The position numbers were made by a program, and so were the translations under genes. The notes under the pieces are model-generated. The model was not told where the DNA came from. It saw only the letters and a program-made list of their open reading frames with translations, and searched no databases. Shown one piece after another: positions 1 to 20,104 of a DNA stretch of 64,000 bases. The DNA is taken from positions 1,302,001 to 1,366,000 of the forward strand of contig CATNEN010000011.1 in assembly GCA_950097015.1 (NCBI GenBank), in the 5' to 3' direction. Each line of letters opens with the position of its first letter. The stretch's first letter is position 1. The DNA is from Macrostomum hystrix (Eukaryota > Animalia > Platyhelminthes).

Positions 1-2771
1 AGGCGAGAAGATTGTCCTTCAGGCAGGCGAGAAGATTGTCCTTCAGGCAGGCGAGAAGATTGTCCTTCAGGTAGGAGAGATGCCTGTCTTTCAGATTGGA
101 GAGATGCCTGTCTTTCAGGTAGGAGAGATGCCTGTCTTTCAGATAGGAGAGATGCCTGTCTTTTAGATAGGAGAGATGCCTGTCTTTCAGATAGGAGAGA
201 TGCCTGTCTTTCAGGTAGGAGAGATGCCTGTCTTTCAGGTAGGAGAGATGCCTGTCTTTCAGGTAGGAGAGATGCCTGTCTTTCAGGTAGGAGACAAGCC
301 TGTCTTTCAGGTAGGAGAGATGCCTGTCTTTCAGGTAGGAGAGATGCCTGTCTTTCAGGTAGGAGAGATGCCTGTCTTTCAGGTAGGTGAGATGCCTGTC
401 TTTCAGGTAGGAGAGATGCCTGTCTTTCAGGTAGGAGAGATGCCTGTCTTTCAGGTAGGAGACAAGCCTGTCTTTCAGGTAGGAGAGATGCCTGTCTTTC
501 AGGTAGGAGAGATGCCTGTCTTTCAGGTAGGAGAGAAGCCTGTCTTTCAGGTAGGTGAGATGCCTGTCTTTCAGGTAGGAGAGATGCCTGTCTTTCAGAT
601 AGGAGAGATGCCTGTCTTTCAGGTAGGAGACAAGCCTGTCTTTCAGGTAGGAGACAAGCCTGTCCTTCAGGCAGGCGAGAAGATTGTCCTTCAGGTAGGA
701 GAGAAGATTGTCCTTCAGGCAGGATAGAAGATTGTCCTTCAGGTAGGCGAGAAGATTGTCCTTCAGGTAGGAGAGAAGATTGTCCTTCAGGTAGGAGAGA
801 AGATTGTCCTTCAGGCAGGCGAGAAGATTGTCCTTCAGGTAGGATAGAAGATTGTCCTTCAGGTAGGATAGAAGGTTGTCCTTCAGGCAGGATAGAAGAT
901 TGTCCTTCAGGCAGGATAGAAGATTGTCCTTCAGGTAGGAGAGAAGATTGTCCTTCAGGCAGGCGAGAAGATTGTCCTTCAGGTAGGATAGAAGATTGTC
1001 CTTCAGGTAGGATAGAAGGTTGTCCTTCAGGCAGGATAGAAGATTGTCCTTCAGGCAGGATAGAAGATTGTCCTTCAGGTAGGAGAGAAGATTGTCCTTC
1101 AGGCAGGAGAGAAGATTGTCCTTCAGGCAGGCGAGAAGATTGTCCTTCAGGTAGGAGAGAAGATTGTCCTTCAGGTAGGAGAGAAGATTGTCCTTCAGGT
1201 AGGAGAGAAGATTGTCCTTCAGGTAGGAGAGAAGATTGTCCTTCAAGTAGGAGAGAGATTGTCCTTCAGGTAGGAGAGAAGATTGTCCTTCAGGTAGGAG
1301 AGAAGATTGTCCTTCAGGCAGGCGAGAAGATTGTCCTTCAGGCAGGCGAGAAGATTGTCCTTCAGGTAGGATAGAAGATTGTCCTTCAGGTAGGAGAGAA
1401 GATTGTCCTTCAGTTAGGAGAGAAGATTGTCCTTCAGGCAGGAGAGAAGATTGTCCTTCAGGTAGGATAGAAGATTGTCCTTCAGGCAGGATAGAAGATT
1501 GTCCTTCAGGTAGGCGAGAAGATTGTCCTTCAGGCAGGATAGAAGATTGTCCTTCAGGTAGGCGAGAAGATTGTCCTTCAGGCAGGCGAGAAGATTGTCC
1601 TTCAGGCAGGCGAGAAGATTGTCCTTCAGGTAGGAGAGAAGATTGTCCTTCAGGTAGGAGAGAAGATTGTCCTTCAGGTAGGAGAGAAGATTGTCCTTCA
1701 GGTAGGAGAGAAGATTGTCCTTCAAGTAGGAGAGAAATTGTCCTTCAGGTAGGAGAGAAGATTTTCCTTCAGGTAGGAGAGAAGATTGTCCTTCAGGTAG
1801 GAGAGAAGATTGTCCTTCAGGCAGGCGAGAAGATTGTCCTTCAGGTAGGATAGAAGATTGTCCTTCAGGTAGGATAGAAGGTTGTCCTTCAGGCAGGATA
1901 GAAGATTGTCCTTCAGGCAGGATAGAAGATTGTCCTTCAGGTAGGAGAGAAGATTGTCCTTCAGGCAGGCGAGAAGATTGTCCTTCAGGCAGGCGAGAAG
2001 ATTGTCCTTCAGGTAGGAGAGAAGATTGTCCTTCAGGCAGGAGAGAAGATTGTCCTTCAGGTAGGAGAGAAGATTGTCCTTCAGGTAGGAGAGAAGATTG
2101 TCCTTCAGGTAGGAGAGAAGATTGTCCTTCAGGTAGGAGAGAAGATTGTCCTTCAGGTAGGAGAAGATTGTCCTTCAGGTAGGAGAGAGATTGTCCTTCA
2201 GGTAGGAGAGAAGATTGTCCTTCAGGTAGGAGAGAAGATTGTCCTTCAGGTAGAATAGAAGATTGTCCTTCAGGCAGGAGAGAAGATTGTCCTTCAGGCA
2301 GGAGAGAAGATTGTCCTTCAGGAAGGAGAGAAGATTGTCCTTCAGGCAGGAGAGAAGATTGTCCTTCAGGCAGGCGAGAAGATTGTCCTTCAGGTAGGAG
2401 AGAAGATTGTCCTTCAGGTAGGATAGAAGGTTGTCCTTCAGGCAGGATAGAAGATTGTCCTTCAGGCAGGATAGAAGGTTGTCCTTCAGGCAGGATAGAA
2501 GATTGTCCTTCAGGCAGGATAGAAGATTGTCCTTCAGGTCGGAGAGAAGATTGTCCTTCAGGCAGGAGAGAAGATTGTCCTTCAGGTAGGAGAGAAGATT
2601 GTCCTTCAGGTAGGAGAGAAGATTGTCCTTCAGGTAGGAGAGAAGATTGTCCTTCAGGTAGGAGAGAAGATTGTCCTTCAGGCAGGCGAGAAGATTGTCC
2701 TTCAGGCAGGCGAGAAGATTGTCCTTCAGGCAGGCGAGAAGATTGTCCTTCAGGCAGGAGAGAAGATTGTC
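1..2771. repeat. 21-bp minisatellite array (AGGTAGGAGAGAAGATTGTCCTTC-type; 5' sub-block variant with GATGCCTGTCTTTC), truncated by the window edge
   Basis: Directly visible 21-bp periodicity with two subtypes, switching at about 660-700. ORFs 176..727, 1414..1725 and 2175..2834 are just 7-aa translations of the unit. Confidence 0.97.
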
Positions 2772-3928
2772 AAAAGACAGAACAGTTTCCTCGTTGTCTT
2801 CGGGTCTAGTGTCACCAAAAAATATGTGAATCATGAAAATATTAGATTACGTAGTCGAAACTAGATTTTCGACGCAGGTTTAACGAGTGCATATAATAAG
2901 CTGTTGGGTTTTTTTAAACTGCGAGTACTTTGAAAATTGGACAAAAGAAGCCACTTTATAGCAGTTTCACTTTTCTTTGTCTGGGTGCAATAAAGCTAGC
3001 TTTTTCTGCCCACAAATTTTGCCATAAAAATGCTTCAGCCCCTAAAGCACCCACAATGGCTGTTTCTTGATTTCGCAATATTCTTGTCGTATTTAGTGCG
3101 AATAAGACAATGAATGAATTTCCAGATCTTTCTTTTTCATCTCAACTAAGTTTTGAGTCAGTAAAAACTGAGCCAATTCGTTTCACTTGGTTGGTTTGAA
3201 AGGCAAGAAACACGATGACAGAATCGTAAAACAGTGACAAAGGGCCCGGGGGTTCGTAACAGGCAGAACTGGTTTAAACCGGTTTGTGAAAGAATAGCAA
3301 AGCCCTCAAATATGGTCAAATGCAGGGGCTATTATAGATCTGATTGTTCTCATTGTAGACGCAATGCAAATGGCCACCCAGAACCAGTTTTTTGTTAACT
3401 TAAAATTGAGAAAGAGACGAGACTTGCTCGCAGGCTCACAGTTGTGCCAAACTTGAACATTGCATATCGCAGCAGCTGATTGCATTATGCAAACGGAGAT
3501 TCGGACAAAGAAGGGAGAGAGAGAAGAATAGAGATTTCAGGTGGACAATGGCCAGCCGCTCGAAGGCAGTTTGCTTTTAAGTTTGACGCGCGACAAACTG
3601 TCTGCCCAAAAAACCTGCCGCCTAAGCCCCCACTAAACCGTACTATATCGCGCCATCTCATAATAACAAACAGCAGGTCTACTGTGGCTGCACATTGCAG
3701 ACACGAGTTGAGTAGGTGGGTTGAATAAAAAAACTGTATTTAAAGCCAAATTGTTCGGCCTCGCTTGCTGCTCCTTGCCTAACTAACTCTAGAGCATCTT
3801 TCATTTTAACAAAAAAGCGGAAAAGTACAGATCTTTTTAGGGCTATCGAGTGCGTTTAAAATTTTCCGAGCAAAGCGGTCGATTGCCAAAGTGAATCGTT
3901 TTTGGCAAAGAATAGTTTTGCAGGAATT

Positions 3929-3972
3929 ATGGCCGACAGACGATCAGGTAAGCAACAGCCGTCACAGAGACG

Positions 3973-4004
<32 letters not shown>

Positions 4005-4027
4005 GACAGCAGCAGCAGCAGCAGCAG
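3929..4027 (+). CDS. Putative first coding exon of the giant T/E-rich (KY-linked) gene: MADRRSGKQQPSQRR-polyQ
   Basis: ATG at 3929 in ATTATGG context; CAG|GTTGGT donor at 4027/4028 in phase 0, matching the next exon. An alternative donor G|GTAAG at 3947/3948 does not phase-match the exon-2 acceptor at 5043/5044. Confidence 0.45.
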
Positions 4028-4083
4028 GTTGGTTGTCTCTTTCGACTTTGTCAATGTGATAATTGTATAGTAGTTAATGTTGC

Positions 4084-4350
4084 GAGGTTGTAGCCGAGTG
4101 GTTAGGGCGTCGGACTCACGACTTGAAGGTCGGGGGTTCGATTCTTGACTCCACTGGAACAATTTGTGTCCTTTAGCAAGACACTTAACTCTGCATTGCT
4201 TCAGTTCACCCAGCTGTTAAATGGGTACCAGCATTAGCTGGGATAATTGAAGGTGGGTGTGGCGTCCCCCCAGTCCATGGACTGAACAGCTGTACGCAGC
4301 CTTCAGATGCGCCGCCCAATATAGCTGCGGCTGTGCTGTCGGCTGCACAT
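4084..4350 (+). mobile_element. tRNA-derived CORE-SINE, full-length copy
   Basis: A box TAGCCGAGTGG and B box GGTTCGATTC, then TGTGTCCTTTAGCAAGACACTTAACTCT...CAGTTCACCCAGCTGTTAAATGGG, which resembles the MIR/CORE domain. Near-identical copies at 61528 (+) and 42239-42503 (-). Confidence 0.85.
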
Positions 4351-5043
4351 CTGGCCCTATTGGGACAGATGTAATCCATTTTTTCAATAGTAGTTAATGT
4401 AGTAGCTATTAGTTAGTAGTAACTACGGTAACTGCTTCTATACTACTGTAGGACTATATTACTATATGATATTAGACTTGCTACTAACGACTAACTTAGT
4501 AACTAGTATCTATAGTAGTAAACTATAGTAACTATAGGCGAGGCAAAAATATAATGTCATTACCCCATTATCCATTTCCATCAATATTGGTCGATCAGTC
4601 CTTACCAGTAACTAAAGTAGTAACTATAGAAACTATAGTAAATTATAGTTACTAATGTATTTACTATAGTGTACAGTAGTTACTTCAGTATTTATTTCAG
4701 TACTAAGTTATTGGTTTGTAGCAAGTGTAATATCAAGGACGACTAGAGATATATACTTCCTACTGATATTGGCTTGCATTTATACTGCCACGATACGAGC
4801 ATCGGCGCAAAGATCAAGCTTCCATAAGCTTCATAGTTGCCCCTACAACCCCTGCTAAACCCCTGCCTTCTGCATGCCTGCTTGCGTGACTCTGTGTTAT
4901 GTGCGTTGGGCCGTAAGATGATAAGAGGATAAGTTCCTCCAAAAGAGGAAAAACTTTTTTAAGGTCATTTTATTTTATAATGAAAATAAAATAATCAAAA
5001 TAAGATTCAATACTAATATACAATACTAACATGCAAACAACAG

Positions 5044-5051
5044 CAACAACT

Positions 5052-5082
<31 letters not shown>

Positions 5083-5629
5083 TCTGCCGCAATCTGGCAG
5101 GACCAGAGCCGATCAACATCCGACGCTGTTTCAGCGTCGTCCACAATCGTTATTCACGAACGAATCCTATCCGACGACGTGACCATGGTGGTGACTGAGC
5201 AGAGCGACGAGATTCAGCAGCAGCAGCAGCAGCAGCAGAACGAGCAGGAGATCGTTGTTGCGACAGGCCCAGTAGCTTCCAATGAGTCGATCATCGACAA
5301 ATCTGTGCGAACGTCGATCACTGTCGAGGCGACGGTGACAGAAGCCTGTCCGCTGATAGACGAAGACGAGTCGACATCGTCCAACTCGGCGGAAGAGCCC
5401 TTCAGTCACAAGTACGAGGAGCTGCGAGAGGGCGATGCCGAGGTCGACCTCACCGGCGGATGCATCGATCGAACCTCGTCGGATGCCTCAGACGGCTTCA
5501 ACGAGCGAGATTTCGACAGCTCGTTGTCGGTCTCTGGTGGCAAGTGCTTCGGCAGCACGTGCAGCTCGTACAGATTCGTCATCAAGCGCAACCAAGCTGG
5601 GAATGGCAGCATAGCAACGAACTCGAGCC
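5044..5629 (+). CDS. Putative exon 2 of the giant T/E-rich gene (polyQ, acidic Ser-rich)
   Basis: Branch site TACTAAC at 5024-5030, acceptor AACAG at 5043, frame open through ORF 5179..5664, donor C|GTGAGG at 5629/5630 in phase 1, matching the acceptor at 6230. Confidence 0.6.
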
Positions 5630-6230
5630 GTGAGGAACTCGATTTGCTTGAAAATTACTTCTAAGAGTTCTGGGATTTTAGGCTCCAGGATCATGCAGAA
5701 ATATTACTCCAGGCTATACAGGCAAGAGTTGCGAAAAGGTAAAAATGAGACACGGGAGAGATGTGACGCAAGAGAGATGAGATGTGGTGATAATATGGGT
5801 AGAGATGATATGAAGTGAGATTAGACATATGTTATAAGATGGGGAGAGATGATATAAGGGGTGGGAGATGAGACAGGGGAGACATGAGACTGGAAGTGAG
5901 TTGCAACCTCGGAGTGACTGAGTTTTGGCCAAGGTATTTGCCAAGAGTACTGGTATTTGGTTCATGGCTCTTGGTCCTAGCAGCTTGCTAATGGTATCTG
6001 GCCCTTCACACATACGTGTGGAGTAAATCTCCTATGGGTTCAAATGCTGTCCTTTATCCCCTGAATCCCGAACTCCCAAGCAAAAAGTGTTAAATAACTA
6101 ACGCCAGATTCTGCCCTGTTTCATTATGAGTTTCTAGTCATTAAATCCTAATGCTTATTCCCTATGTGCTCAACTGGCTTCGGTGGCACTAACCAACAAA
6201 GTAGGATTTGCCTCACTATATGATCCACAG

Positions 6231-9200
6231 AAAAGTCAACGACAACAAGAACAACGACAACAACAACGACGCAGCGCAAAGCTGCGGCAGAAATTTCCAG
6301 CAGAACCACCGGAGAAGTGCTGGAGGAGGCCATTTCATCGACAAGCATCGCGTCCGCGGCAGCCGAGGTGAAGACAGGAGCCGAAGCCAGCGGAACCACC
6401 AGCTCGAGATACGCCGCGAAACAAACTAGTGGAAAACAGTCGAATCAAGAAGAGCAGCTAAATACAGAACTCACCTTTGAAGTTGTTGAGGAAGGCGAAG
6501 AGTCCATTGTCAGGACAAGACAAAAGACAGAAATCAATGTAGGAAAGGTTTTCACTGATGGAACCAAGGAGACTAAAGTCCTTGAAACTACTGAGACAAC
6601 TGACAGAGTTATCGTCGGTGTTACTGGTCCTAGTAGAGTGACTGAAGTTGTGACAACGACGACGATCACCTCGACTACTGACTCGAATTCGAATTTCGAT
6701 TCATCGGCTGAGCAAGCAAGCGCTAGCGACTTTGTTATTGTTACCAAGCAGCAAGTGATCGAGTCGCAGATAGAATCTGATGAACGGGACAAAACTGTCG
6801 CAACAAGCAATCTCACTAACGATGGAATGGAAAGTTTTGTCATTACGAAAACCGATCCGACAATAGTTTGTCCGACTGTAACCACACAGGATACCAGCGA
6901 CTCCGGCAAGAGAGTATCAACAACTGAGGAAGTCATCACGGAGTCCAAGCAGACTAGCATTGGTGGCTCTGTTAGGACTGCAGAAAACGTAACGGTCGTG
7001 GTCAAGAAGACTACAAATCTCATTACCGAAGTGCACAGCTCAGAAGAGACAGACACAACAACCGATCTAACGATTGACGACACAGACGAATTTGATGACA
7101 CCATGACTGACGCAACATTGGAGACCACGGACGACATAACAATGGACGCAAGAACCGACGCGACCGAAGGAAATTCTGATGGCGGAGATAGCGACGCAAC
7201 CATGGAAACCACTGACGATCTGACCGAGGATTCTGGCTATCCTGCGTCTGCGTCACAATTGACCGAGGTCATTCAAGGCGATGGACGAACTGTTACCAAG
7301 GTGACCAGAGTGACGAAAAAGAAAATTGTAACCACGACAGGAAAAGAAGCGAGTGGAAAAAACGTTGACAACTCCACCAGAGCTTCAATACTGACAACAA
7401 AGAGCAAGCGGTCTGTCAATTCCATTCTGGAAACAGAGCACACTCTAAAAAAGTGCACCGAAGACGCCACTGGTGGCTCTTGGTTCTCCAAGTCGTTCGC
7501 TAGCGAAATTGAGCGCTTTGCCAGTGCCGATAATAAGAAGAGCCGTTACGTAGATCTTGACGCACTGTGGGCAGATCTGTTCATTCCAAGCAGCTACACA
7601 GTCCAGTACGTTACTGAGGAAAGCTCGAAACCTTCTTCCACGTGGGTGTGTCGCTATCTTGATATCGATCTAAAAGAGGGAAGCAGCTCTACTGCTTCCT
7701 GTGCCACAGAGGAGAGCACAATCGATTCTAGCACCAAGATTTCCGTTTTCAAAACTGACCATTCAGAGGATGCTGAGGCAAGACGTGCGTCCAAGAACCA
7801 AATCACAACAACCAAGACCACAACGGTCATTAGAAGACAGGACGGTGAAAGTACTAAAGGTGAAGTGACGAAGTTTGATCAGACGATGGACAGTAGCAAC
7901 AAGGAAGAAGAGTCCAAAATAACCACTGACGATGGAGAGACCACGACAACAACTACAACTACCATCAGGACTATGACTATTACAAATACAAATGGAGATG
8001 ATAGCGAGAAAGTAACATCAGTAACAAAGACGTCCACAACTGATCTTATCGGATGCGCCATTCGTACTACCAGCGACGAAACCAATTCAAACGGCATCGA
8101 AGTGCTGCACAGAAGGGATTCTAAAGACGGTCCAAGCGAAGAACCTCTTGATAGCGAGTTCTTGTCCGTCACGAGCGGTCAAGTTACAATAGAAATTAAC
8201 TCGGTGCAAAAGGTGATTGACGCAATGATCGAGGTGACAACCGAGGTGACGACCGAGGCGACGGAGATCGAACAGACGACTGAGGAGACCACCGAGGAGA
8301 CTACTGGGGAGACCACCGAAGAGACCACCAAGGAGACCACCGAGGAGACTACTGAGGAGACCACCGAGGAGACAACAGAGGTGACGGAGATCGAACAGAC
8401 GACTGAGGAGACCACCGAGGAGACTACTGGGGAGACCACCGAAGAGACCACCGAGGAGACCACCGAGGAGACTACTGAGGAGACCACCGAGGAGACAACA
8501 GAGGTGACGGAGATCGAACAGACGACTGAGGAGACAACCGAGGAGACCACCGAGGAGACAACAGAGGTGACGGAGATCGAACAGACGACTGAGGAGACTG
8601 AGGAGACCACGGTGACAACCGAGGCGACGGAGATCGAACAGACGACTGAGGAGACCACGGTGACAACCGTGGCGACGGAGATCGAACAGACGACCGAGGA
8701 GACCGCCGAGGTGACAACCGAGGCGACGGAGATCGAACAGACGACTGAGGAGACCACCGAGGAGACTACTGAGGAGACCACCGAAGAGACCACCGAGGAG
8801 ACCACCGAGGAGACAACAGAGGTGACGGAGATCGAACAGACGACTGAGGAGACCACCGAGGAGACCACGGAGTTGACGGAGATCGAACAGACGACTGAGG
8901 AGACCACCGAGGAGACCACTGAGGAAACCACTGCGGAGACCACCGAGGTGACAACCGAGGGGACGGAGATCGAACAGACGACTGAGGAGACCACCGAGGA
9001 GACCACCGAGGAGACCACTGAAGTGACGGAGATCAAACAGACGACTGAGGAGACCACCGAGGAGACCTCCGAGGAGACCACGGAGGTGACGGAGATCGAA
9101 CAGACCACTGAGGAGACCACTGAGGAGACTACTGAGGGGACAACAGAGGTGACGGAGATCGAACAGACGACTGGGGAGACCACCGAGGAGATCACCGAGG

Positions 9201-12200
9201 AGACCACCGAGGAGACAACCGAGGTGACGGAGATCGAACAGACGACGGAGGAGACCACCGAGGAGACCACCGAGAAAGAAACATCATGGACGAAGACGTC
9301 AACTACAGAAATGATCGGATGCGCTATTCGAGCTACTGGCGAAAGTTCAAAAAGCTTTGAAGTTCTTCACAGAAGAGCATCCACAGAGAGCCTAAGCGAA
9401 GAGGCGCAAAAAAGTGAATTCTTGTTTGTCAAGGAGGACCAAGTAACAATCGAGATTGACTCAGTGCAAAAAGCGATCGATGCGAAAAGAAAATCATCCA
9501 GTCCAGAAAAGTCCAAAAATTCTACGACTAAAAAAACTAAAAAGACACCGAGGGTTAAAATCGATCAAACGGTCACTGAGGTTGAGCAGACAACCGAGGA
9601 ATCCACTGAGACCACTGAGGTTGAAGAAACGACCGATGAGGCTACAGAGGTTGAGCAGACAACCGAGGAGACGATTGAGACCACTGAGGTTGAGGAAACG
9701 ACTGATGAGGCTACTGAGGTTGAGCAGACAACCGAGGAATCGATTGAGACCACTGAGGTTGAGGAAACGACCGATGAGGCTACTGAGGTTGAGCAGACAA
9801 CCGAGGAATCGATTGAGACCACTGAGATTGAGGAAACGACCGATGAGACGACTGAGATTGAGCAGACAACCGAGGAGACAACTGAGGTTGAGCAGACAAC
9901 CGAGGAGACAACTGAGGTTGAGCAGACTACCCAGGAGACTATTGAGACCACTGAGGTTGAGGAAACGACCGATGAGACTACTGAGGTTGAGCAGACTACC
10001 GAGGAGATCACTGAGATTGAGCAGACAACCGAGGAATCGATTGAGACCACTGAGGTTGAGGAAACGACCGATGAGACGACTGAGATTGAGCAGACAACCG
10101 AGGAGACAACTGAGGTTGAGCAGACAACCGAGGAGACCCAGGAGACTATTGAGACCACTGAGGTTGAGGAAACGACCGATGAGACTACTGAGGTTGAGCA
10201 GACTACCGAGGAGATCACTGAGATTGAACAGACAACCGAGGAATCGATTGAGACCACTGAGATTGAGGAAACGACCGAGGAGACCACTGAGATTGAGCAG
10301 ACAACCGAGGAGACAGCTGAGATTGAGCAGACAACCGAGGAGACAACTGAGGTTGAGCAGACAACCGAGGAATCGATTGAGACTACTGAGGTTGAGCAGA
10401 CTACCGAGGAGACCACTGAGGTTGAGCAGACAACCGAGGAGACAGCTGAGATTGAGCAGACAACCGAGGAGACAACTGAGGTTGAGCAGACAACCGAGGA
10501 ATCGATTGAGACTACTGAGGTTGAGCAGACTACCGAGGAGACAACTGAGATTGAGCAGACAACCGAGGAGACAACTGAGGTTGAGCAGACTACCCAGGAG
10601 ACTATTGAGACCACTGAGATTGAGGAAACGACCGAGGAGACAACTGAGGTTGAGCAGACAACCGAGGAATCGATTGAGACTACTGAGGTTGAGCAGACTA
10701 CCGAGGAGATCACTGAGATTGAGCAGACAACCGAGGAGACAACTGAGGTTGAGCAGACAACCGAGGAGACAACTGAGGTTGAGCAGACAACCGAGGAGAC
10801 AACTGAGGTTGAGCAGACAACCGAGGAGACAACTGAGGTTGAGCAGACTACCCAGGAGACTATTGAGACCACTGAGATTGAGGAGACGACCGATGAGACT
10901 ACTGAGGTTGAGCAGACAACTGAAATGACAACTGAGGTTGAGCAGACAACTGAAGAGACCACTGAGATTGAGCAGACAACCGAGGAGACAACTGAGGTTG
11001 AGCAGACAACCGAGGAGACCACTGAGATTGAGCAGACAACCGAGGAGACAGCTGAGATTGAGCAGACAACCGAGGAGACAACTGAGGTTGAGCAGACTAC
11101 CCAGGAGACTATTGAGACCACTGAGGTTGAGGAAACGACCGATGAGACTACTGAGGTTGAGCAGACAACCGAGGAGACAACTGATGTTGAGCAGACAACC
11201 GAGGAGACAACTGAGGTTGAGCAGACTACCCAGGAGACTATTGAGACCACTGAGATTGAGGAGACGACCGAGGAGACTACTGAGGTTGAGCAGACAACTG
11301 AAGTGACAACTGAGGTTGAGCAGACAACCGAGGAGACAACTGAGATTGAGCAGACTACCGAGGAGACTATTGAGACCACTGAGATTGAGGAAACGACCGA
11401 TGAGACTACTAAGGTTGAGCAGACAACTGAAGAGACAACTGAGGTTGAGCAGACTACCGAGGAGACCACTGAGATTGAGCAGACAACCGAGGAATCGATT
11501 GAGACCACTGAGATTGAGGAAACGACCGATGAGACTACTGAGGTTGAGCAGACAACTGAAGAGACCACTGAGATTGAGCAGACAACCGAGGAGACTATTG
11601 AGACCTGTGAAATGACTGAGATCAAGAATTCTTTTGCCTTTACCGAAGCCTTCGGTGACACAGGGGCGGATGTCTTCGGGTATGCTTTTATTGTGTACGG
11701 CTCGGTGTTCATGTCCGAGACTTTCTCATGTGGCGAGTTCAGAGAAAGGCAAGATTCGAGTTCTCAAGAGTTTGCAAGTGAATATTTGAAAGTCATTGAC
11801 TCTGAGAAGTTAACCAGAAGCACTGAGTTTTATCTCGAGACTGATGTTTTCAGCATGAAGAAGCGCTGCACAACTTACGTTGAAGATGATGAGCCGACTT
11901 CAAAGACGACCATTAGTCAGCAGGTCACTGGTGACGACAGTCAAACTGATACAACGCTCCAAACAACTACCGTTACAACTACTACCATCACAACAATGGT
12001 TACTGGAAAGAGTATTCAGGAGACAAGACTCGTCGACGATGCTCAGAATAGTGCACTGACTGTCGCTTCTACTGCGCGGATAGCTAATATTTCGTATTCC
12101 ACATCCGACTACCGCTTCATCTCATCTCTGGTTAGCCACTACGTCAGACAGATCAATCCTGATCGCCTACAGTTTATTTCAACCATTTCTGGTGAACAAA

Positions 12201-15200
12201 AGACTGATGTGGAAATCGCCGATACTTCAATGATTCAAACATCCAGCTCCTCTACTTCCGTGACTAAGGCGACCACAAACGTGACAGATTCAAAGACCAC
12301 AAGCATCAGCGAGGTGACGTCGATCGGAGCAGGTGACTACCGACAAATTTCAACATTGGCCAGTCATCAAGTTAGACAAGTCGATCCATCAAGTTTGATC
12401 TCTGTCTCTGGTATTGTGTCGAAGTCGAGCACAGAAGAGAGAAACCTCGAATCAAGCAGCATTGGAGCCAAATCTTCAAAAAGCATCATCACGACGACAA
12501 CAACCACAATGAAAACGGTCACAGGAGGGATAGTAGTTGAAACCAACGCAACACAGATCACATCGAAGGAAGAGCTCATCGGTGAAGAAAACCAACTTCA
12601 CGGGTCCGCGGCCAGAGTACAGTCAGGAGAATCTGGATCGAGCAGTTTGCTCGTGCTGCATCGCAGGACATCGAACGCAGAGCCAACTGAGGATTCACTT
12701 AAGGATGAGTTCCTGTCTATCACGACTGCGACTGGTCAATCAACTGCGACTTCCAAAGTGACAACTGAAATTTCACATGGACAGAATTCCGACTACAGAA
12801 TGATATCTTCTCTGATCAGCCATCATGTCAGACAGACCAATTCGGCATGTCTAAGCGAAATTTCTGGCTTGTCAACGTCTGCTGAGACAGTCGAGATTAA
12901 GGAGACCACAGAGATTGAGCTAACGACAGAAGAAACGAATGAAACCACTGAGACAGTTAAGACCGGTTGCGGATCAGTGGAAGTTTCTGTGTCAGGAAAA
13001 GGTACTAAGAAAAAGAGACGATCTCGACGAGGCAAATCAGGTTCTCAGAAAGAAGTTGAAACATCAGAGACCAAGCAGACGACAGAACAAACAGCTGAAG
13101 AGACAATCGAGACTACTCAGGAGGTTGAGCAGACTACAGAAGACACCGCTGAGATTGAACAGACTAGAGAAGAGACCACTGAGATTGAGGAGACCACTGA
13201 GGAGACCACTGAGATTGAGGAGACCACTGAGGAGACCACCGAGATTGAGGAGACCACTGAGGAGACCACTGAGATTGAGGAGACAACTGAGGAGACCACT
13301 GAGATTGAGCAGACCACTGAGGAGACCACTGAGATTAAGGAGACGACTGTGGAGACCACTGAGATTGAGGAGACCACTGAGGAGACCACTGAGATTGAGG
13401 AGACAACTGTGGACACCACTGAGATTGAGGAGACCACTGAGGAGACCACTGAGATTGAGGAGACCACTGAGGAGACCACTGAGATTGAGGAGACAACTGA
13501 GGAGACCACTGAGATTGAGCAGACCACTGAGGAGACCACTGAGATTAAGGAGACGACTGTGGAGACCACTGAGATTGAGGAGACCACTGAGGAGACCACT
13601 GAGATTGAGGAGACCACTGAGGAGACCACTGAGATTGAGGAGACAACTGTGGACACCACTGAGATTGAGCGGACTACAGAGGAGACAATCGAGACTACTC
13701 AGGAGATTGAACTGAGTACTGAAGAAGGTCGTGAGACTTCTGAGACGACAAGAACAAAGAAGGTCATTGGTTGCATCGATACTGACTCGCAATTCGACGA
13801 AGATACTATCGAGCTGACAGAATATCATGATGAATATGAAGTCGGTGGTGGGATGACCGATTCAAACTCTTACGCCTATCGACGATTAAAGAGGACGCAA
13901 GGACAGAGCGCCGAATCACGTGACCAAAAAGACTCAGCAGTTGCCGAAGCCAACAGTGGCGAAGAATCAGACAAAAGTCAGAGTAAGACCTCCACTATAA
14001 CAACGGTGGAAACAACAACTACAATAGTGCGCAAGAAGAGGCCCAACAAAGCAGCCTCGAGCAAGGCTACTCGGCAACAAGATCAATTCAGCGACTCAGA
14101 TGAAGAAGACAAGCGAAGGAGTCGGTTCGGAAAAAATAAATCGTTCTCTCGGCACGACAGCGAGACGACCGAAACTGTGAAAAGTAATTCACAGATAAGA
14201 AAAACGGAAGAAGCCTTCGAGACTTCATGGACCTCTGAGATTGAGCAGACGATTGATGAGACCACTGAGATTGAGCAGACCACTGAGGAGACCACTGAGA
14301 TTGAGCAGACGACAGAGGAGACAACTGAGATTGAGCAGACTACTGAGGAGACAACTGAGATTGAGCAGACGACTGAGGAGACAACTGAGATTGAGCAGAC
14401 TACTGAGGAGACAACTGAGATTGAGCAGACCACTGATGAGACAACTGAGATTGAGCAGACCACTGAGGAGACAACTGAGATTGAGCAGACGACTGATGAG
14501 ACAATTGAGATTGAGCATACCACTGAGGAGATCACTGAGATTGAGCAGACGACTGATGAGACCACTGAGATTGAGCAGACGACAGAGGAGACAACTGAGA
14601 TTGAGCAGACGACTGAGGAGACAACTGAGATTGAGCAGACGACTGATGAGACAACTGAGATTGAGCAGACGACAGAGGAGACAACTGAGATTGAGGAGAC
14701 GACTGATGAGACCACTGAGATTGAGCAGACGACTGAGGAGACCACTGAGATTGAGCAGACGACTGATGAGACAACTGAGATTGAGCAGACGACTGATGAG
14801 ACCACTGAGATTGTGGAGGCTATAGAAGAAACCACAGAGACCACTGAGGAGACGGTTGAGACCGGTGGCGCATCAGTGGAAGTTTCTGTCACAGGAAAAG
14901 GTTCTAAGAAAAAGAGACGATCTCGACGAGGCAAATCAGGATCTCAAAAGGAAGTTAACGACTTCGAGACCAAGCAGACGACTGAGACCATCGAAATTTC
15001 TGAGAACAGTGAGACCACAGAAGTTGTAGAGATTCAGGACACGACTGAGGAGACCACCGAAATTGAGGAGTTGACTGATGAGACCACTGAGATTGAGCAG
15101 ACGACTGAAGAGACAACTGAGATTGAGCAGACGACTGATGAGACAACTGAGATTGAGCAGACGACTGATGAGACAACTGAGATTGAGCAGACGACTGATG

Positions 15201-16792
15201 AGACAACTGAGATTGAGCAGACGACTGAGGAGACCACTGAGATTGAGCAGACGACTGATGAGACAACTGAGATTGAGCAGACGACTGAGGAGACCACTGA
15301 GATTGAGCAGTCGACTGAGGAGACCACTGAGATTGAGCAGACGACAGAGGAGACAACTGAGATTGAGCAGACGACTGATGAGACTACTGAGATTGAGCAG
15401 TCGACTGAGGAGACCACTGAGATTGAGCAGACGACAGAGGAGACAACTGAGATTGAGCAGACGACTGATGAGACAACTGAGATTGAGCAGACGACTGATG
15501 AGACAACTGAGATTGAGCAGACGACTGAGGAGACCACTGAGATTGAGCAGTCGACTGAGGAGACCACTGAGATTGAGCAGACGACAGAGGAGACAACTGA
15601 GATTGAGCAGACGACTGATGAGACTACTGAGATTGAGCAGTCGACTGCGGAGACCACTGAGATTGAGCAGACGACTGATGCGACAATTGAGATTGAGCAG
15701 ACCTCTGAGGAGACCACTAAGAATGTTGAGACGGCTGAGGAGTCATCCGAGAATGTCAAGACGGCTGAGGATATCACTGTGATTGAGCAAACGACCGAGC
15801 AGGAAGTTTCTTTGGATGATGCAACCGAGGAGACTATTGAGACCATAAAGTCGCAACAGACTAGCTCGGAGACTTTGACAACTTCTCAAGCCGCTAAACA
15901 GAAGCAGATTGAGAGCGCTGTTACTGATGGTGAAGACTTCTTCACCATCTGTGCGCAGAGAAGCCAAAGCAGAAGACTAGATCAAGTGGGTCAGTCCGCA
16001 TCCAAAGAGTCTTCTTGTGAAAGTCAGTCGACTGAAGCTGTCGAAGAACAATCAACTGTGCCAAAAAGAGGTCAGGTTGTTACTGACGTCATTCAAGAGG
16101 TCTCCGAACTTGCTGGCTCTCTTGAGACGACCAGCTTTCATGACTTCGACTCCATTCTTTCCCTGGAAGAGTCACAACTGCTGACTGGTGAGCAGGTGCC
16201 GCAGATTCACTCTGAGTCTAGTCATGAGCACGTTACAACAACGTTGGACGACTCTTCAATGTCCGTGGACACGTCGATAGACACAACGGTACTCGTGTCG
16301 TCCAGACTGACAACTAGACGGTCAACGCTGCAGGAACAGACCATCATCAAGCCAGCCGTGAAGGAGACGGACGCGTCCGAGATCGAGGCTGAGACAGTGT
16401 CCGCAACATCGACTGAAAGCAGCGGAGAGAGCCAGACGACGGGCTTCAAGAAGCTCATCAGCTACTTCTGGGGCGGCTCCAAAAAGGGCACCGCAGCCGA
16501 GTCGCAGAGCCAAAAAGCCGATCAGAAAAGCGAGACGGAGGTCTCAGAATCGGAGGAATCGGCTGCTACAAGGATTCGAAGCAGCAGTTCAACGGCGTCC
16601 AACGCTGAGGAGGACATCTACGAGAAGAGGCGCCGCGCAGCTCGCGAGCTGTTCATGTTCGGCGAGGTGAAGTCGGACACTTCTGTGTCCGAGGAGCTCA
16701 ACCAGAATATTCATCACCACGCCACCTCCCTGTCTCAGTCTGCCTACTCTGGCTGGTACTCCGGCTTTCAGCAGGACGACTCGCGTGACGAG
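6231..16792 (+). CDS. Giant exon (about 3520 aa) encoding an acidic Thr/Glu-rich low-complexity protein with five blocks of (T)EIEQTTEET-like repeats
   Basis: The single frame is stop-free for more than 10.5 kb (ORF 6317..16849), including long non-repetitive stretches. Acceptor CCACAG at 6230, with CTAAC upstream, is phase 1. Thr codons in the repeats vary largely at the wobble base. The 3' end is uncertain (donor at 16755/56 or GC donor at 16792/93). Confidence 0.85.
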
Positions 16793-16891
16793 GCAAGAAC
16801 TCTAAGCAGATTTGTTGTTTTTATCAACTTGTTAGAAAATGATTTATGACTCAAGTTGATGATAAATGACTCAACTTGTCCATTTTAATAG

Positions 16892-16961
16892 GATCAAGCG
16901 TTCACTACTGAGACAAATTTCTCGTCAGCATTGTCTTGCATGCAGGAAGGCACTGGACAGG
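16892..16961 (+). CDS. Small exon downstream of the giant exon (two open frames; likely IKRSLLRQISRQHCLACRKALDR)
   Basis: TTTTAATAG acceptor at 16891 and G|GTAATT donor at 16961/62. Confidence 0.55.
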
Positions 16962-17048
16962 GTAATTGGGCTTCGATTTTCGTCGAGTTTCAATTCAAAA
17001 AAGTGTATTTAAAATACAAGTCATTATCATCTATTCAACATCTTTCAG

Positions 17049-17090
17049 GTTATCAAACTTGGAGGGCCAAGGGAGCCTACGAAAAATGCC
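17049..17090 (+). CDS. 42-bp exon (likely VIKLGGPREPTKNA)
   Basis: TCTTTCAG acceptor at 17048 and C|GTAAG donor at 17090/91. Confidence 0.6.
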
Positions 17091-17243
17091 GTAAGAGTTT
17101 TTTTTTCAAATTCGTGCAACGAAAACTTAGTTCGTTGAAAAATCGAACTTCTAAAAATAAAACACGCCGCACACACTCCCTCACCTGGGGGTGGGTGGCG
17201 GAGTGGTCTAACGCGTTTTCCACTCTAAACGAGGCTGAGACAG

Positions 17244-17406
17244 TGTCCGCAACATGCTGAGGAGGAGGAGGAACTAAGGTCCCTAAGCTCGATTCCGCTA
17301 AGCGAGGCCACATTCATTTGGGGCGCAGCCGCGGAGATAAGGCTAAGAGCTTGTCGTGCAATTTACGCCAATTTACGAGGAAGTCAGGACAGATGTACAC
17401 ACCTGC
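17244..17406 (+). CDS. Linker exon (CPQHAEEEEELRSLSSIPLSEATFIWGAAAEIRLRACRAIYANLRGSQDRCTHL) leading into the KY-like exon
   Basis: GAGACAG acceptor at 17243, with CTAAC and a pyrimidine tract upstream. C|GTGAGC donor at 17406/07 is phase 1, matching the acceptor at 17581. Confidence 0.55.
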
Positions 17407-17581
17407 GTGAGCGTGTGCCTGCGTACAGTATCTGTGTGCGTGTGTGCTCAGCAGTCAGCGGTATGTGCAGAATTGCCTCCTCGATGTCTGCTGGTCTAGT
17501 GTCACCAAATGATGTGCCGTTGCTCGCTGCCTTCCTGCAATTGTTATTATCATCATTTTTCGTTAACTCCCATGCGTACAG

Positions 17582-19065
17582 GCACTCCGAGCAAGCCGAC
17601 CAGAAAGTTTAAGCTGCCAAGCGATCTCGTTTCCACCGACGCCGCCGACTCAGAGCCGGGAGTAACAACCGCGGCCAGCTCAGCGCCTGTCGACCGTCCT
17701 TCGCTGGAGCAGTTCAGCCAGGTGGATGCTCACGCCCTGCGTCTAGTCGAGGCCCGAGTCAAGCCCGCCGATCTGCGCGAGCTCATCTGGCAGCTCATTG
17801 GTCAGCCGGGCGTCGAAGACCCCATCGAGCGGCTCAGACTGATCTTCGTTTGGTTGTGCGCTGCCAAATCGGACGCTTTTTCGACAAATGCGACGGAAGA
17901 TTCCGCTGAGGCCCTGCTGGCAGCCGCTCTCGACGGACGAGTCCCGATGGCGCTGGCCCTACGAGTCCTGTGCCGAGCCTGCAGCCTCGACTGTCGCCTG
18001 GTGCAGGGTGCTGTGCGTGGCCCAAAGGACCCGGCAGTTGGCAGCGCACTGCATCTCTGGAACGCCGTTCTCATCAACGGCTGCTGGCGATTAGTGGACA
18101 GCTTCTGGGCCGCCAGACGATTGCGCAGCAGCGGTGGAGAAGTCGGCAAGTCGCAGCTGGAGCAGCTGGATGAGTTCTACTTCCTCGCCAGACCAGGCCA
18201 GCTCGTCTACACCCATCTTCCTGAGAAAAGTGTCTGGCAGCTGTTGGAGAGGCCCCTGACTGCGGACAGATTCCGCGCCCTGGCTCCAGTCAAGAACGCA
18301 TTCTTTAAGTTCGGCCTGGAGCTGCGCTCGCACGCAGACGCAGTGATTCAGTGGAACTCGACTGACGCCGACCCGGATGCGGATCCGCAGTTGGCGCCTC
18401 TGTCGCCGGCGCTCATTGTTCGCATCGGCGTTCCGCCAGGTCTGGCCGGCCGACTAAGCTTCGTCGCTACGCTGCAGTCCGAGGCCGGAGCCGAGGTCAA
18501 GCATCGGGTTCTGCACCTGTTCGACCGTCAGCAGGCCTGCCTAGTAACCGCCGTGCGACCTCCAGACAGTGGCACCTGGCGGTTGACTTTCTTCACCCGA
18601 GACCTCGCCCTGACAGCTCAGCGGCAGCAGGAGCAGCGCGCAGTCTTTGAGTCTGTCTGCGAGTATCGAATCGTCGCCAAGGTCGACCGGCAAAGTTCGA
18701 TTCTGACCGACTTTCCGCACAGCCAGAACGCGGGCTACGGCCCCGCCGACGCCAACTGGGCTGCCGTGGGCGGCTTCAACCTGACGGCAGTGACCGGCGG
18801 CGAAAACACTGCCACGGACTTGTCAATGCCGATTGTAACTGTGACAGACGGTCAGGTGGACGATGTCCGATTTCGCCTGCCGAGTCGCTCCGCCGCCAGG
18901 CTGCACTACGTCGCGAAGCTGCGTGGCAGCGACGATGGCTCAGCTGTCGCTGCTGGACGGTCTGGAGCTGCTGCTGAAACTGGCGGATCTTGCATCGTTC
19001 GCATGGCTGGCGGACACCTTCTGGTGCGACCGCTGCCGCCGTCTGCTGGCCTGCACGCTTTGGAG
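17582..19065 (+). CDS. KY-like: KY/hillarin-family transglutaminase-like domain plus first KY-type repeats (exon)
   Basis: Motifs FSQVDAHA, LRLIFVWLC, LCRACSLDCRLVQGAVRG, HLWNAVLINGCWRLVDSFWAA, DEFYFLARPGQLVYTHLP and WQLLERPLTADRF match the KY/hillarin/LTD-1 family pattern. Acceptor TACAG at 17581; donor GAG|GTGAGT at 19065/66. Confidence 0.88.
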
Positions 19066-19213
19066 GTGAGTATAGCCAACCCTCAAAGTCACACAGAGAA
19101 CGTCAGTACAAGACCCTCTCTGATAAAGTTACGCATTAAGTCTCACCGAATCCCTCGCTCCATCGAAGGTCTATGCCGGCGGTCGACCTCAGGACGGGGG
19201 AAATAAGCTGCAG

Positions 19214-19559
19214 CTGGTGCAGCAGATCCTGCTGGTCTGTCGGCGTGGTGACGCCGAGTCGGCGGCTGACTCGCTGCACCAGCCTCCGGGTCACCTAGGC
19301 GGCACGCACAAGGCCGCCGAGTTTGGCTTCCACTGCGCGTCGCACGAGGACCCGCTGGTGTCCAGTCGGCAGCCGTTGGCTGAGGACTCGCCGTTTGAGT
19401 TCGTAATGAGCAAGGACCGGCCCCTGTGTCTTGCTGCTCACCTCATTCGCCTGACAGCGTCCGGTTCACAGAGCAGCTCCTACGGCTCGGACTGCGTGCT
19501 GCAGGAGATTCGGCTCAGTGACTCTGTCGCCACCTTCAACGTCTGGCTACCGTCGCCAG
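19214..19559 (+). CDS. KY-like: KY-like gene, penultimate exon
   Basis: CTGCAG acceptor at 19213 (phase 0); GHLGGTHKAAEFGFHCASHEDP resembles the KY repeat motif; CAG|GTAAAT donor at 19559/60. Confidence 0.75.
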
Positions 19560-19637
19560 GTAAATCATTAACAGCAGAAAAACAACGGGGGAATTTCAAA
19601 TATTTCGTTATTTTGTATTTCCATCAAAACCTCGCAG

Positions 19638-20104
19638 GCTACTACAAGCTGGTGATCTTCGGTCTGCCCGCCACCGAGCGGCACGACAACTTCGCCAACC
19701 TGTGGCAGCTGCTGATCTGCGCTCCGTCAAGACAAGCGGACGCAGCCGCGTGGTCCTCGCGCGCCTCCGCTGGTCCTCGCTACCCGCTGCAGTTCGCGGC
19801 CTGGTCAGATTCCTGCAGCCTGCGCCAGCCAATCACAGGCCAGCTGCCAATCGGAGCCAATCAGCTCGTCGACTTTGACCTGACGGTGCCAGGAGCCAGA
19901 TCTGTGTCCGTTGTCTGCGGCGACACCTGGAAGGCGTTGAGGGCGCAGCCAGCTGGCCGATGGAGCGGACGGGTCGGGTTCGCTGATCAGCCAGCAGGTG
20001 GGCGAGTGTCTGTGTGCGCCAACTACGCTGACGGGGACTCGGCGACATACCGAACCCTACTGGAATACCGACTAGCAGAGCTGCCCGAGTTCAGCGACTA
20101 CTAA
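19638..20104 (+). CDS. KY-like: KY-like gene, last coding exon
   Basis: CTCGCAG acceptor at 19637 (phase 1). GYYKLVIFG, RYPLQFAAWSDSCSLRQPITGQLP, VDFDLTVPGARSVSVVCGDTW and VSVCANY...YRTLLEY are typical of the hillarin/KY C-terminal repeat. Stop TAA at 20102-20104. Confidence 0.85.

Follow-up and report, generated by a model that had tools for sequence, protein, structure and literature searches.

A giant Thr/Glu-rich reading frame and a KY/hillarin module in Macrostomum hystrix, most likely joined in a single protein

The DNA analysed here is a stretch of 64,000 nt from the flatworm Macrostomum hystrix (contig C11, positions 1,302,001–1,366,000), called the window below and numbered from its first letter. 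At 3929–20104, on the forward strand, it carries a giant open frame rich in Thr and Glu followed by a transglutaminase-like module of the KY/hillarin family. A sequence-only reading had proposed that the two are parts of one giant protein, and we conclude that this is the most likely arrangement. Genome searches used the M. hystrix assembly (220,453,370 bases in 42 contigs), while relatives of the encoded proteins were sought by exhaustive HMMER search of 1.84 billion representative proteins.

The frame at 6317–16849 (forward strand) runs without interruption for 3510 codons counted from its first start codon, or 3541 from stop to stop, confirming the giant acidic single exon that had been described earlier. 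In our gene model the giant exon spans 6231–16792 (10,562 nt, forward strand); left unspliced at 16792, the frame continues to a stop at 16847–16849. Thr accounts for 26.5% and Glu for 23.9% of its residues, Asp and Glu together number 989 as against 212 Lys and Arg, and the composition is dominated by T/E/S/I/Q, with little Pro or Lys. The repeats cover about half of the frame and the remainder is unique sequence: 1787 of the 3510 residues (51%, by a sliding-window count) sit in five arrays, all read on the forward strand. These lie at 8201–9313 (TTEE and TEIEQ units), 9545–11623 (units of 30, 69, 99 and 129 nt), 13046–13744 (EIEETTEETT, 30-nt unit), 14195–14863 and 14963–15763 (both EIEQTTEETT); Tandem Repeats Finder reported periods of 12, 30, 63, 99 and 129 nt in the frame. 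The unique segments contain motifs that recur, namely VLHRRxS...EFL and DYRxISSLxSHxVRQ (three times each) and KKKRRSRRGK (twice). Towards the end of the exon, at about 16120–16753 (forward strand), lies a tail that is 58% identical to a protein of the congener Macrostomum lignano, A0A1I8FY85, in which the last ∼220 residues of the frame are thus retained as protein.

Some 1700 non-repetitive codons remain open in this frame, and within the 30-nt arrays third codon positions vary two to four times as much as first and second positions. Because of these two features and the conservation of the tail in M. lignano, we regard the giant frame as real coding sequence and not merely an open minisatellite. 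Its unique parts have no paralog in the M. hystrix genome and no usable neighbour in the ESM Atlas, and the Pfam scan, which covered exon 2 and unique parts of the giant exon, returned no family, only two sub-threshold chance matches. The conserved tail motif was not found among the 170 relatives fetched or at the hillarin paralog loci described below, and a word-index protein search with the tail gave no match among candidates of 1930–6140 residues, the search being limited by its length window and content. As separate observations, the M. hystrix genome is rich in minisatellites that yield long open frames on both strands, and a second giant low-complexity frame of 4226 codons, with copies ∼2.6 kb apart, lies at C38:31611975–31623169; its match to a T/E query is one of composition only.

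Upstream of the giant exon, a frame-consistent 5′ model can be built. A tentative exon 1 (3929–4027, forward strand) opens with an ATG that has A at −3 and G at +4, encodes MADRRSGKQQ and then polyglutamine (polyQ), and ends in a weak donor, CAG/GTTGGT. It joins in phase 0 to exon 2 (5044–5629, forward strand), which encodes polyQ and acidic unique sequence, has a TACTAAC-like branch site before its acceptor, and ends at the phase 1 donor C/GTGAGG; the next acceptor lies before 6231. Because the donor of exon 1 is weak, the true start could instead lie within exon 2, at the ATG of 5185 (ACCATGG). No signal peptide was recognized at the polar polyQ N-terminus, where no dedicated predictor was applied, and no hydrophobic run of 14 residues or more occurs across the giant frame; on these grounds a secreted mucin was rejected. 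Exon 2 also contains, at 5557–5566, another near-consensus GC donor context (GTG/GCAAGT), which may hint at the use of GC donors in this gene or may be chance.

The KY/hillarin module is encoded by three forward-strand exons, 17582–19065, 19193–19559 and 19638–20104, separated by short GT–AG introns (19066–19192 and 19560–19637). The first contains a PxxF.LPS linker motif, the transglutaminase-like core and the Ig-like_KY domain; the third ends in ...YRTLLEYRLAELPEFSDY and a stop, beyond which an AT-rich region begins. All three align end to end with A0A1I8FY85, which agrees with the splice junctions of the second and of the third exon (WLPSPG/YYKLVIFG). In the open reading frame (ORF) 17509–19206, Transglut_core (PF01841) scores 25.6 bits at residues 101–197, against a gathering cut-off of 23, and Ig-like_KY (PF23265) follows at residues 254–395 with 45.8 bits against a cut-off of 27, so the earlier assignment to the KY/hillarin family stands. 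The AlphaFold model of the first KY exon has a predicted local distance difference test (pLDDT) score of 84.6 and a predicted template modelling (pTM) score of 0.86. Pfam matched no LIM domain upstream of the module in exon 2 or in the scanned unique parts of the giant exon, 3929–20104 holds one H-domain and no second, and a word-index protein search with the initial 240 residues encoded by the KY exon, under the same limits of length window and content, gave no match.

The column of the catalytic Cys holds Arg in this module. Of 111 aligned cores, 74 have Cys in this column, 18 have Lys and five have Arg, and the change from Cys to Arg is common to the M. hystrix module and A0A1I8FY85. The His (HLWNAV) and the Asp (LVDSFW) of the triad are kept; a full Cys–His–Asp triad is absent from the module. 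Because the catalytic Cys is replaced, we read the module as a catalytically dead pseudo-enzyme, and most plausibly as a binding module. Inactive transglutaminase-like domains are known to bind partners instead of catalysing, as in the interactions of yeast Cyk3 with Rho1 and of D-hillarin with the septin Pnut (PMC3718969).

The module lies on the same strand as the giant frame, and the distance between the stop at 16849 and the acceptor before 17582 is 733 nt. A path across this gap can be drawn in frame, from a donor after 16792 through exon A (16892–16961, 70 nt, phase 0 to 1) and exon B (17049–17090, a 42-nt mini-exon, phase 1 to 1, encoding (G)YQTWRAKGAYEKC) to the acceptor before 17582; both small exons are on the forward strand. 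The resulting 8-exon model has 13,677 nt and encodes 4558 residues with no internal stop. The small phase-linked exons of the sequence-only reading are therefore frame-consistent, but two are needed, not three, and the donor is GC, not GT. The joined model was checked locally for frame, length and composition; database and folding queries were made with single exons, and a 77-residue junction peptide was compared solely with the relatives already fetched.

The proposed GC–AG intron at 16793–16891 (forward strand) has 99 nt and 29% GC and reads GAG/GCAAGA ... TTTAATAG/G, the slashes marking the splice sites; its retention adds 18 codons and a stop. GAG/GCAAGA is the sole frame-compatible donor in good context, in phase 0, and GC content at third codon positions (GC3) changes abruptly there: it stands at 0.61 for the unique C-terminal region, rises to 0.85 over the 13 codons ahead of 16793 and drops to 0.22 over the 18 codons up to the stop. 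The flanks have 29–30% GC, like the neighbouring intron. Two GT donors were rejected: that at 16667 because the peptide encoded beyond it is nearly identical in M. lignano, and that at 16756 for poor context and wrong phase.

Exon A starts 42 nt past the stop of the giant frame and the KY frame begins no more than 42–96 nt past it. A gap of 42 nt is too short to hold an independent promoter, and we therefore take the two parts to be co-transcribed and 3929–20104 to be a single transcription unit. Exon B has no in-frame ATG and begins in phase 1, so that an upstream coding exon, exon A, is needed; trans-splicing at the exon B acceptor (TTTCAG) was rejected on the same ground, together with the leader AUG being out of frame there. 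Within the 491-nt intron that follows exon B lies an interspersed repeat (17273–17420, ∼100–150 bp), of which a first look gave 1281 candidates genome-wide, the best listed copies being 77–92% identical. Inside introns there are also tRNA-like stretches, at 4075–4150 and 17180–17260 (e.g. GTTGTAGCCGAGTGGTTAGGGCG...GGTTCGATTC); ARAGORN called no tRNA gene at either place and no Rfam family matched, and they are probably relics of short interspersed nuclear element (SINE) type.

The search for an ortholog in other Macrostomum, which had been suggested as a check, recovered A0A1I8FY85 from M. lignano. This 'TGc domain-containing protein' of 1061 residues is 64% identical and is the only match above 41% identity among the 1.84 billion representatives; the module is 60–64% and the tail 58% identical. 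It is truncated at the N-terminus and starts inside TTEFEQ/TTEIEQ repeats. Its tail reads ...EEDIYEKRRRAARELFMFGEVKSD..NQNIHHHATSLSQSAYSG, and over its final 44 residues, up to ...SQSAYSG, it is almost the same as the giant frame. In a single chain, A0A1I8FY85 contains the T/E repeats, the conserved tail, a linker of 31 residues without Met and the complete KY module, from which two introns have been removed. We take A0A1I8FY85 to be the ortholog of the M. hystrix giant gene, as judged from the alignments. Because the model joins all of these parts, the same adjacency, orientation and in-frame connection are present in a deeply diverged congener. M. lignano also has a separate LIM + KY transcript, RNA1509_4625.

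The two linking exons have counterparts in the hillarin family itself. M. hystrix has two canonical two-domain hillarin paralogs, at C39:18028481–18045724 (forward strand) and C10:2073418–2090961 (reverse strand), which have intron positions in common with the giant gene; the C39 paralog is the ortholog of M. lignano A0A1I8IVW1 (∼85% identity). In the C39 paralog two small exons precede the H2 exon, one of 76 nt (18038819–18038894, phase 0 to 1) and one of 42 nt (phase 1 to 1), with an intron of 116 nt between them and one of 473 nt after the second; at the giant locus the series is the 70-nt exon A (phase 0 to 1), an 87-nt intron, the 42-nt exon B (phase 1 to 1), a 491-nt intron and the KY exon. 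The 76-nt exon is thus of the same phase class as exon A and similar in size. The C39 mini-exon encodes (Y)SKAWEPKGQYEQK and agrees with exon B at 5 of 14 residues, and the TW..KG.Y motif of exon B recurs in M. lignano and trematode relatives. In both loci the last intron lies in phase 1, nine codons before the Phe of a PPxxFxLP motif; the C10 paralog has this intron position, ahead of the PPPSDFSLP motif, in common with them. Agreement with the C39 mini-exon in length, phases, motif and following intron argues that exon B is a genuine exon, and from gene structure we regard it as shown that the two linking exons are homologous to exons inside hillarin genes. The C39 paralog has a Gly/Pro/Gln low-complexity region of at least 300 residues between its two H-domains. 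Apart from this, introns of the C39 and C10 paralogs hold minisatellites that read PKPEPVQ/GLGWTGS and ISYPYPISSH.

The fused ortholog, the homology of the linking exons to a hillarin paralog and the switch in composition at the donor lead us to favour a fused mRNA, perhaps beside an unspliced isoform ending at 16849, with a probability of about 0.6. The main product is then most likely a single protein of 4558 residues, with a mass of ∼506 kDa and an isoelectric point of ∼4. The proposal of a giant protein joining the T/E part to the KY module is therefore favoured but unproven, because the GC donor is rare and because an operon with a spliced leader fits the same acceptor.

Several observations weigh against fusion. 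The donor is of the GC type and no GT donor fits; GC–AG introns make up ∼1% of animal introns. In exon A, no sequence similarity to the 76-nt exon of the C39 paralog was found. The homology of A0A1I8FY85 to the giant tail ends at ...SAYSG, 13 codons before the GC donor, and its linker is 11 residues longer than expected and differs in sequence from exons A and B. At residues 654–680 of A0A1I8FY85 a conserved VFESVCEYRIVA... block is replaced by unrelated APCSSQSACIKSTRKSIKLRTTS, which suggests a frameshift in the M. lignano model or assembly. This entry, which we take to be a MAKER/SNAP model of a 2015 assembly and not a cDNA, is probably only a gene prediction, in which the junction may be an artefact. 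A word-index search with its junction region, limited in length window and content as before, found A0A1I8FY85 itself only. Moreover, operons are documented in Macrostomum: in M. lignano, polycistronic precursors make up ∼7% of assembled transcripts, and ∼15% of genes lie in operons, whose spacers are typically close to 100 bp. The spliced leader of Macrostomum has ...TTGCATG at its end, and trans-splicing at 16892 or 16946 would place the leader AUG in frame.

The foremost alternative, which we consider possible though doubtful, is accordingly an operon of two genes, encoding a giant T/E protein (∼3750 residues) and a separate hillarin-like protein (∼830 residues). The giant mRNA would be polyadenylated within ∼40 nt of the stop at 16847–16849, and the spliced leader would be joined before 16892 or 16946, the downstream protein starting at the leader AUG or at the ATG at 16941; the trans-splice site would derive from what was once a cis-acceptor within a hillarin copy that had been partly duplicated. 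Documented precursors and ∼100-bp spacers, a leader ATG in frame with both phase 0 acceptors, the in-frame stop at 16847 with no GT donor ahead of it, and a GATAAA hexamer at 16864–16869 all suit such an arrangement, and gene predictors can wrongly merge operon neighbours. The claim that the KY part has no convincing separate start was therefore too strong, given the in-frame ATG in exon A and a spliced leader that ends in ATG. A phase 0 acceptor does not discriminate, because it fits fusion and operon alike. Against the operon, the 18 codons before the stop have a GC3 of 0.22 as compared with 0.61–0.85 upstream, no canonical AATAAA occurs between 16849 and 16891, and a 3′ untranslated region and a spacer must both fit in 42 nt. 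A near-consensus GC donor in the right phase sits exactly at the composition switch, in the M. lignano model the frame continues across a linker that lacks Met, and the acceptor TTTAATAG departs from the enriched trans-splice motif [T/C]TNCAG.

Far less probable is an independent KY gene with a promoter in the 491-nt gap and a start at ATG 17509 or 17572; on this view exons A and B would resemble true exons by chance alone. ORF 17509–19206 does open with an ATG and has a second in-frame ATG at 17572; nevertheless, similarity to M. lignano sets in right at the acceptor (TPSKP, 17584), which is preceded by a pyrimidine tract, exon B matches the paralog mini-exon in its 42 nt, its phases and 5 of 14 residues, the next intron interrupts the same codon in three paralogs, and the gap is partly occupied by the interspersed repeat. 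We give scarcely any credence to the view that the giant frame is an untranslated minisatellite region open by chance: minisatellites give long frames on both strands genome-wide and the antisense of the arrays is open for up to 715 codons, but the non-repetitive codons, the excess of third-position variability, the tail conserved as protein and the splice-compatible 5′ exons all stand against it. Even jointly, an internal promoter and a non-coding repeat remain quite improbable.

Comparison with known proteins places the module in an old family. Its closest named relative outside Macrostomum is hillarin of the leech Hirudo medicinalis (Q964C7), with whose second H-domain it is collinear (34% identity over residues 603–935, E = 1.5e-76) and with which it shares a Y..KPPxxFxL linker motif and a ...LLEY C-terminal end. 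Leech-type hillarin has two tandem H-domains, whereas the giant gene has one, with no first H-domain upstream; D-hillarin and LTD-1 of Caenorhabditis elegans carry an N-terminal LIM domain, whereas Pfam found none in the parts of the giant gene that it covered. In place of such upstream domains the giant gene has ∼3700 residues of polyQ and T/E-repeat sequence. The vertebrate Z-disc protein KY (kyphoscoliosis peptidase) has the same Pfam pair, Transglut_core and Ig-like_KY; in contrast to the Arg of the M. hystrix module, relatives of the KY type keep the catalytic Cys (74 of 111 cores).

The best structural match of the module is not a Z-disc protein but FAP246, a protein of the ciliary central-pair C1 apparatus of Chlamydomonas (PDB 7n6g and 7sqc). 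A sequence search led to no other solved structure (E = 3.5e-6 for FAP246), and FAP246 was also the best fold match (Foldseek E = 1e-15, over the core and the Ig-like part); identity is 14–18% and the overall architecture is different, and a ciliary role is not implied by this match. Erythrocyte protein 4.2 gave a weak fold match to the module (Foldseek E of ∼1e-3 to 5e-3). Protein 4.2 and yeast Cyk3 are cases in which a dead active site serves binding (PMC3718969); both are distant or unrelated in sequence and lack giant repeats. The likeness to titin PEVK put forward in the sequence-only reading does not extend to sequence or to flanking domains. PEVK and E-rich segments of titin are likewise long, acidic, of low complexity and probably disordered, a likeness in possible working only, whereas the T/E repeats are 10-residue T/E/I/Q units without Pro or Lys, with no flanking Ig/FN3 arrays and no homology; Pfam found no Ig or FN3 domain upstream of the module in the parts scanned.

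If the fusion is correct, the protein would have a short polyQ N-terminus, a T/E and unique region of ∼3500 residues and a single C-terminal H-domain attached through the two small exons. Its likely ancestor is a hillarin paralog in which the first domain was lost and the sequence ahead of the two linker exons turned into the giant acidic exon. Carrying a net charge near −780 and hardly any hydrophobic residues, the T/E part would be an extended, intrinsically disordered polyanion acting as a spacer or spring; many of its Thr residues lie in CK2-type contexts (T-x-x-E), and the basic KKKRRSRRGK patches and RRxS motifs may serve regulation or binding. Through the dead transglutaminase module the T/E chain would be tethered to a cytoskeletal partner. 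Since the GC donor is weak, an unspliced isoform lacking the KY module and ending at 16849 may coexist with the fusion. Spacer or spring function and cytoskeletal anchoring are inferred, as is the PEVK-like elastic role in muscle that the sequence-only reading had in view. As a whole, the picture of a half-megadalton intracellular brush or spring, anchored by a dead module, conserved across deeply diverged Macrostomum and switched between anchored and unanchored forms by the GC donor, is a tentative one that we would not yet expect to hold in full.

The hillarin/KY family is already known; what is new is the giant acidic T/E region upstream of the module, and we regard the gene as a variant of that family. 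Searches of the literature turned up no paper that connects Macrostomum with KY or with GC–AG introns. If joined as proposed, the product would be by far the largest hillarin/KY protein among the relatives seen, the longest of the best 150 matches having 1677 residues, and would illustrate clearly how repeat expansion upstream of an old domain can build a giant acidic region that is disordered. It would also offer a tractable system in which to ask what inactive transglutaminase-like modules bind, and whether polyanionic segments of such length can work as spacers or springs in a protein other than muscle titin. RNA interference and in situ hybridization are available in Macrostomum, and transgenesis also in M. 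lignano. If instead the operon is correct, a former internal acceptor would have been turned into a trans-splice site, with the leader supplying the start codon. With either outcome, the locus is a test case for the merging of gene models in genomes with spliced leaders.

Upstream of the gene, positions 1–3000 of the window hold minisatellites of 24-nt units that are open on both strands, for example 176–727 (forward strand), which reads MPVFQVGE, and 1414–2834 (reverse strand), which reads KDNLLSYL. These arrays look like intergenic satellite DNA.

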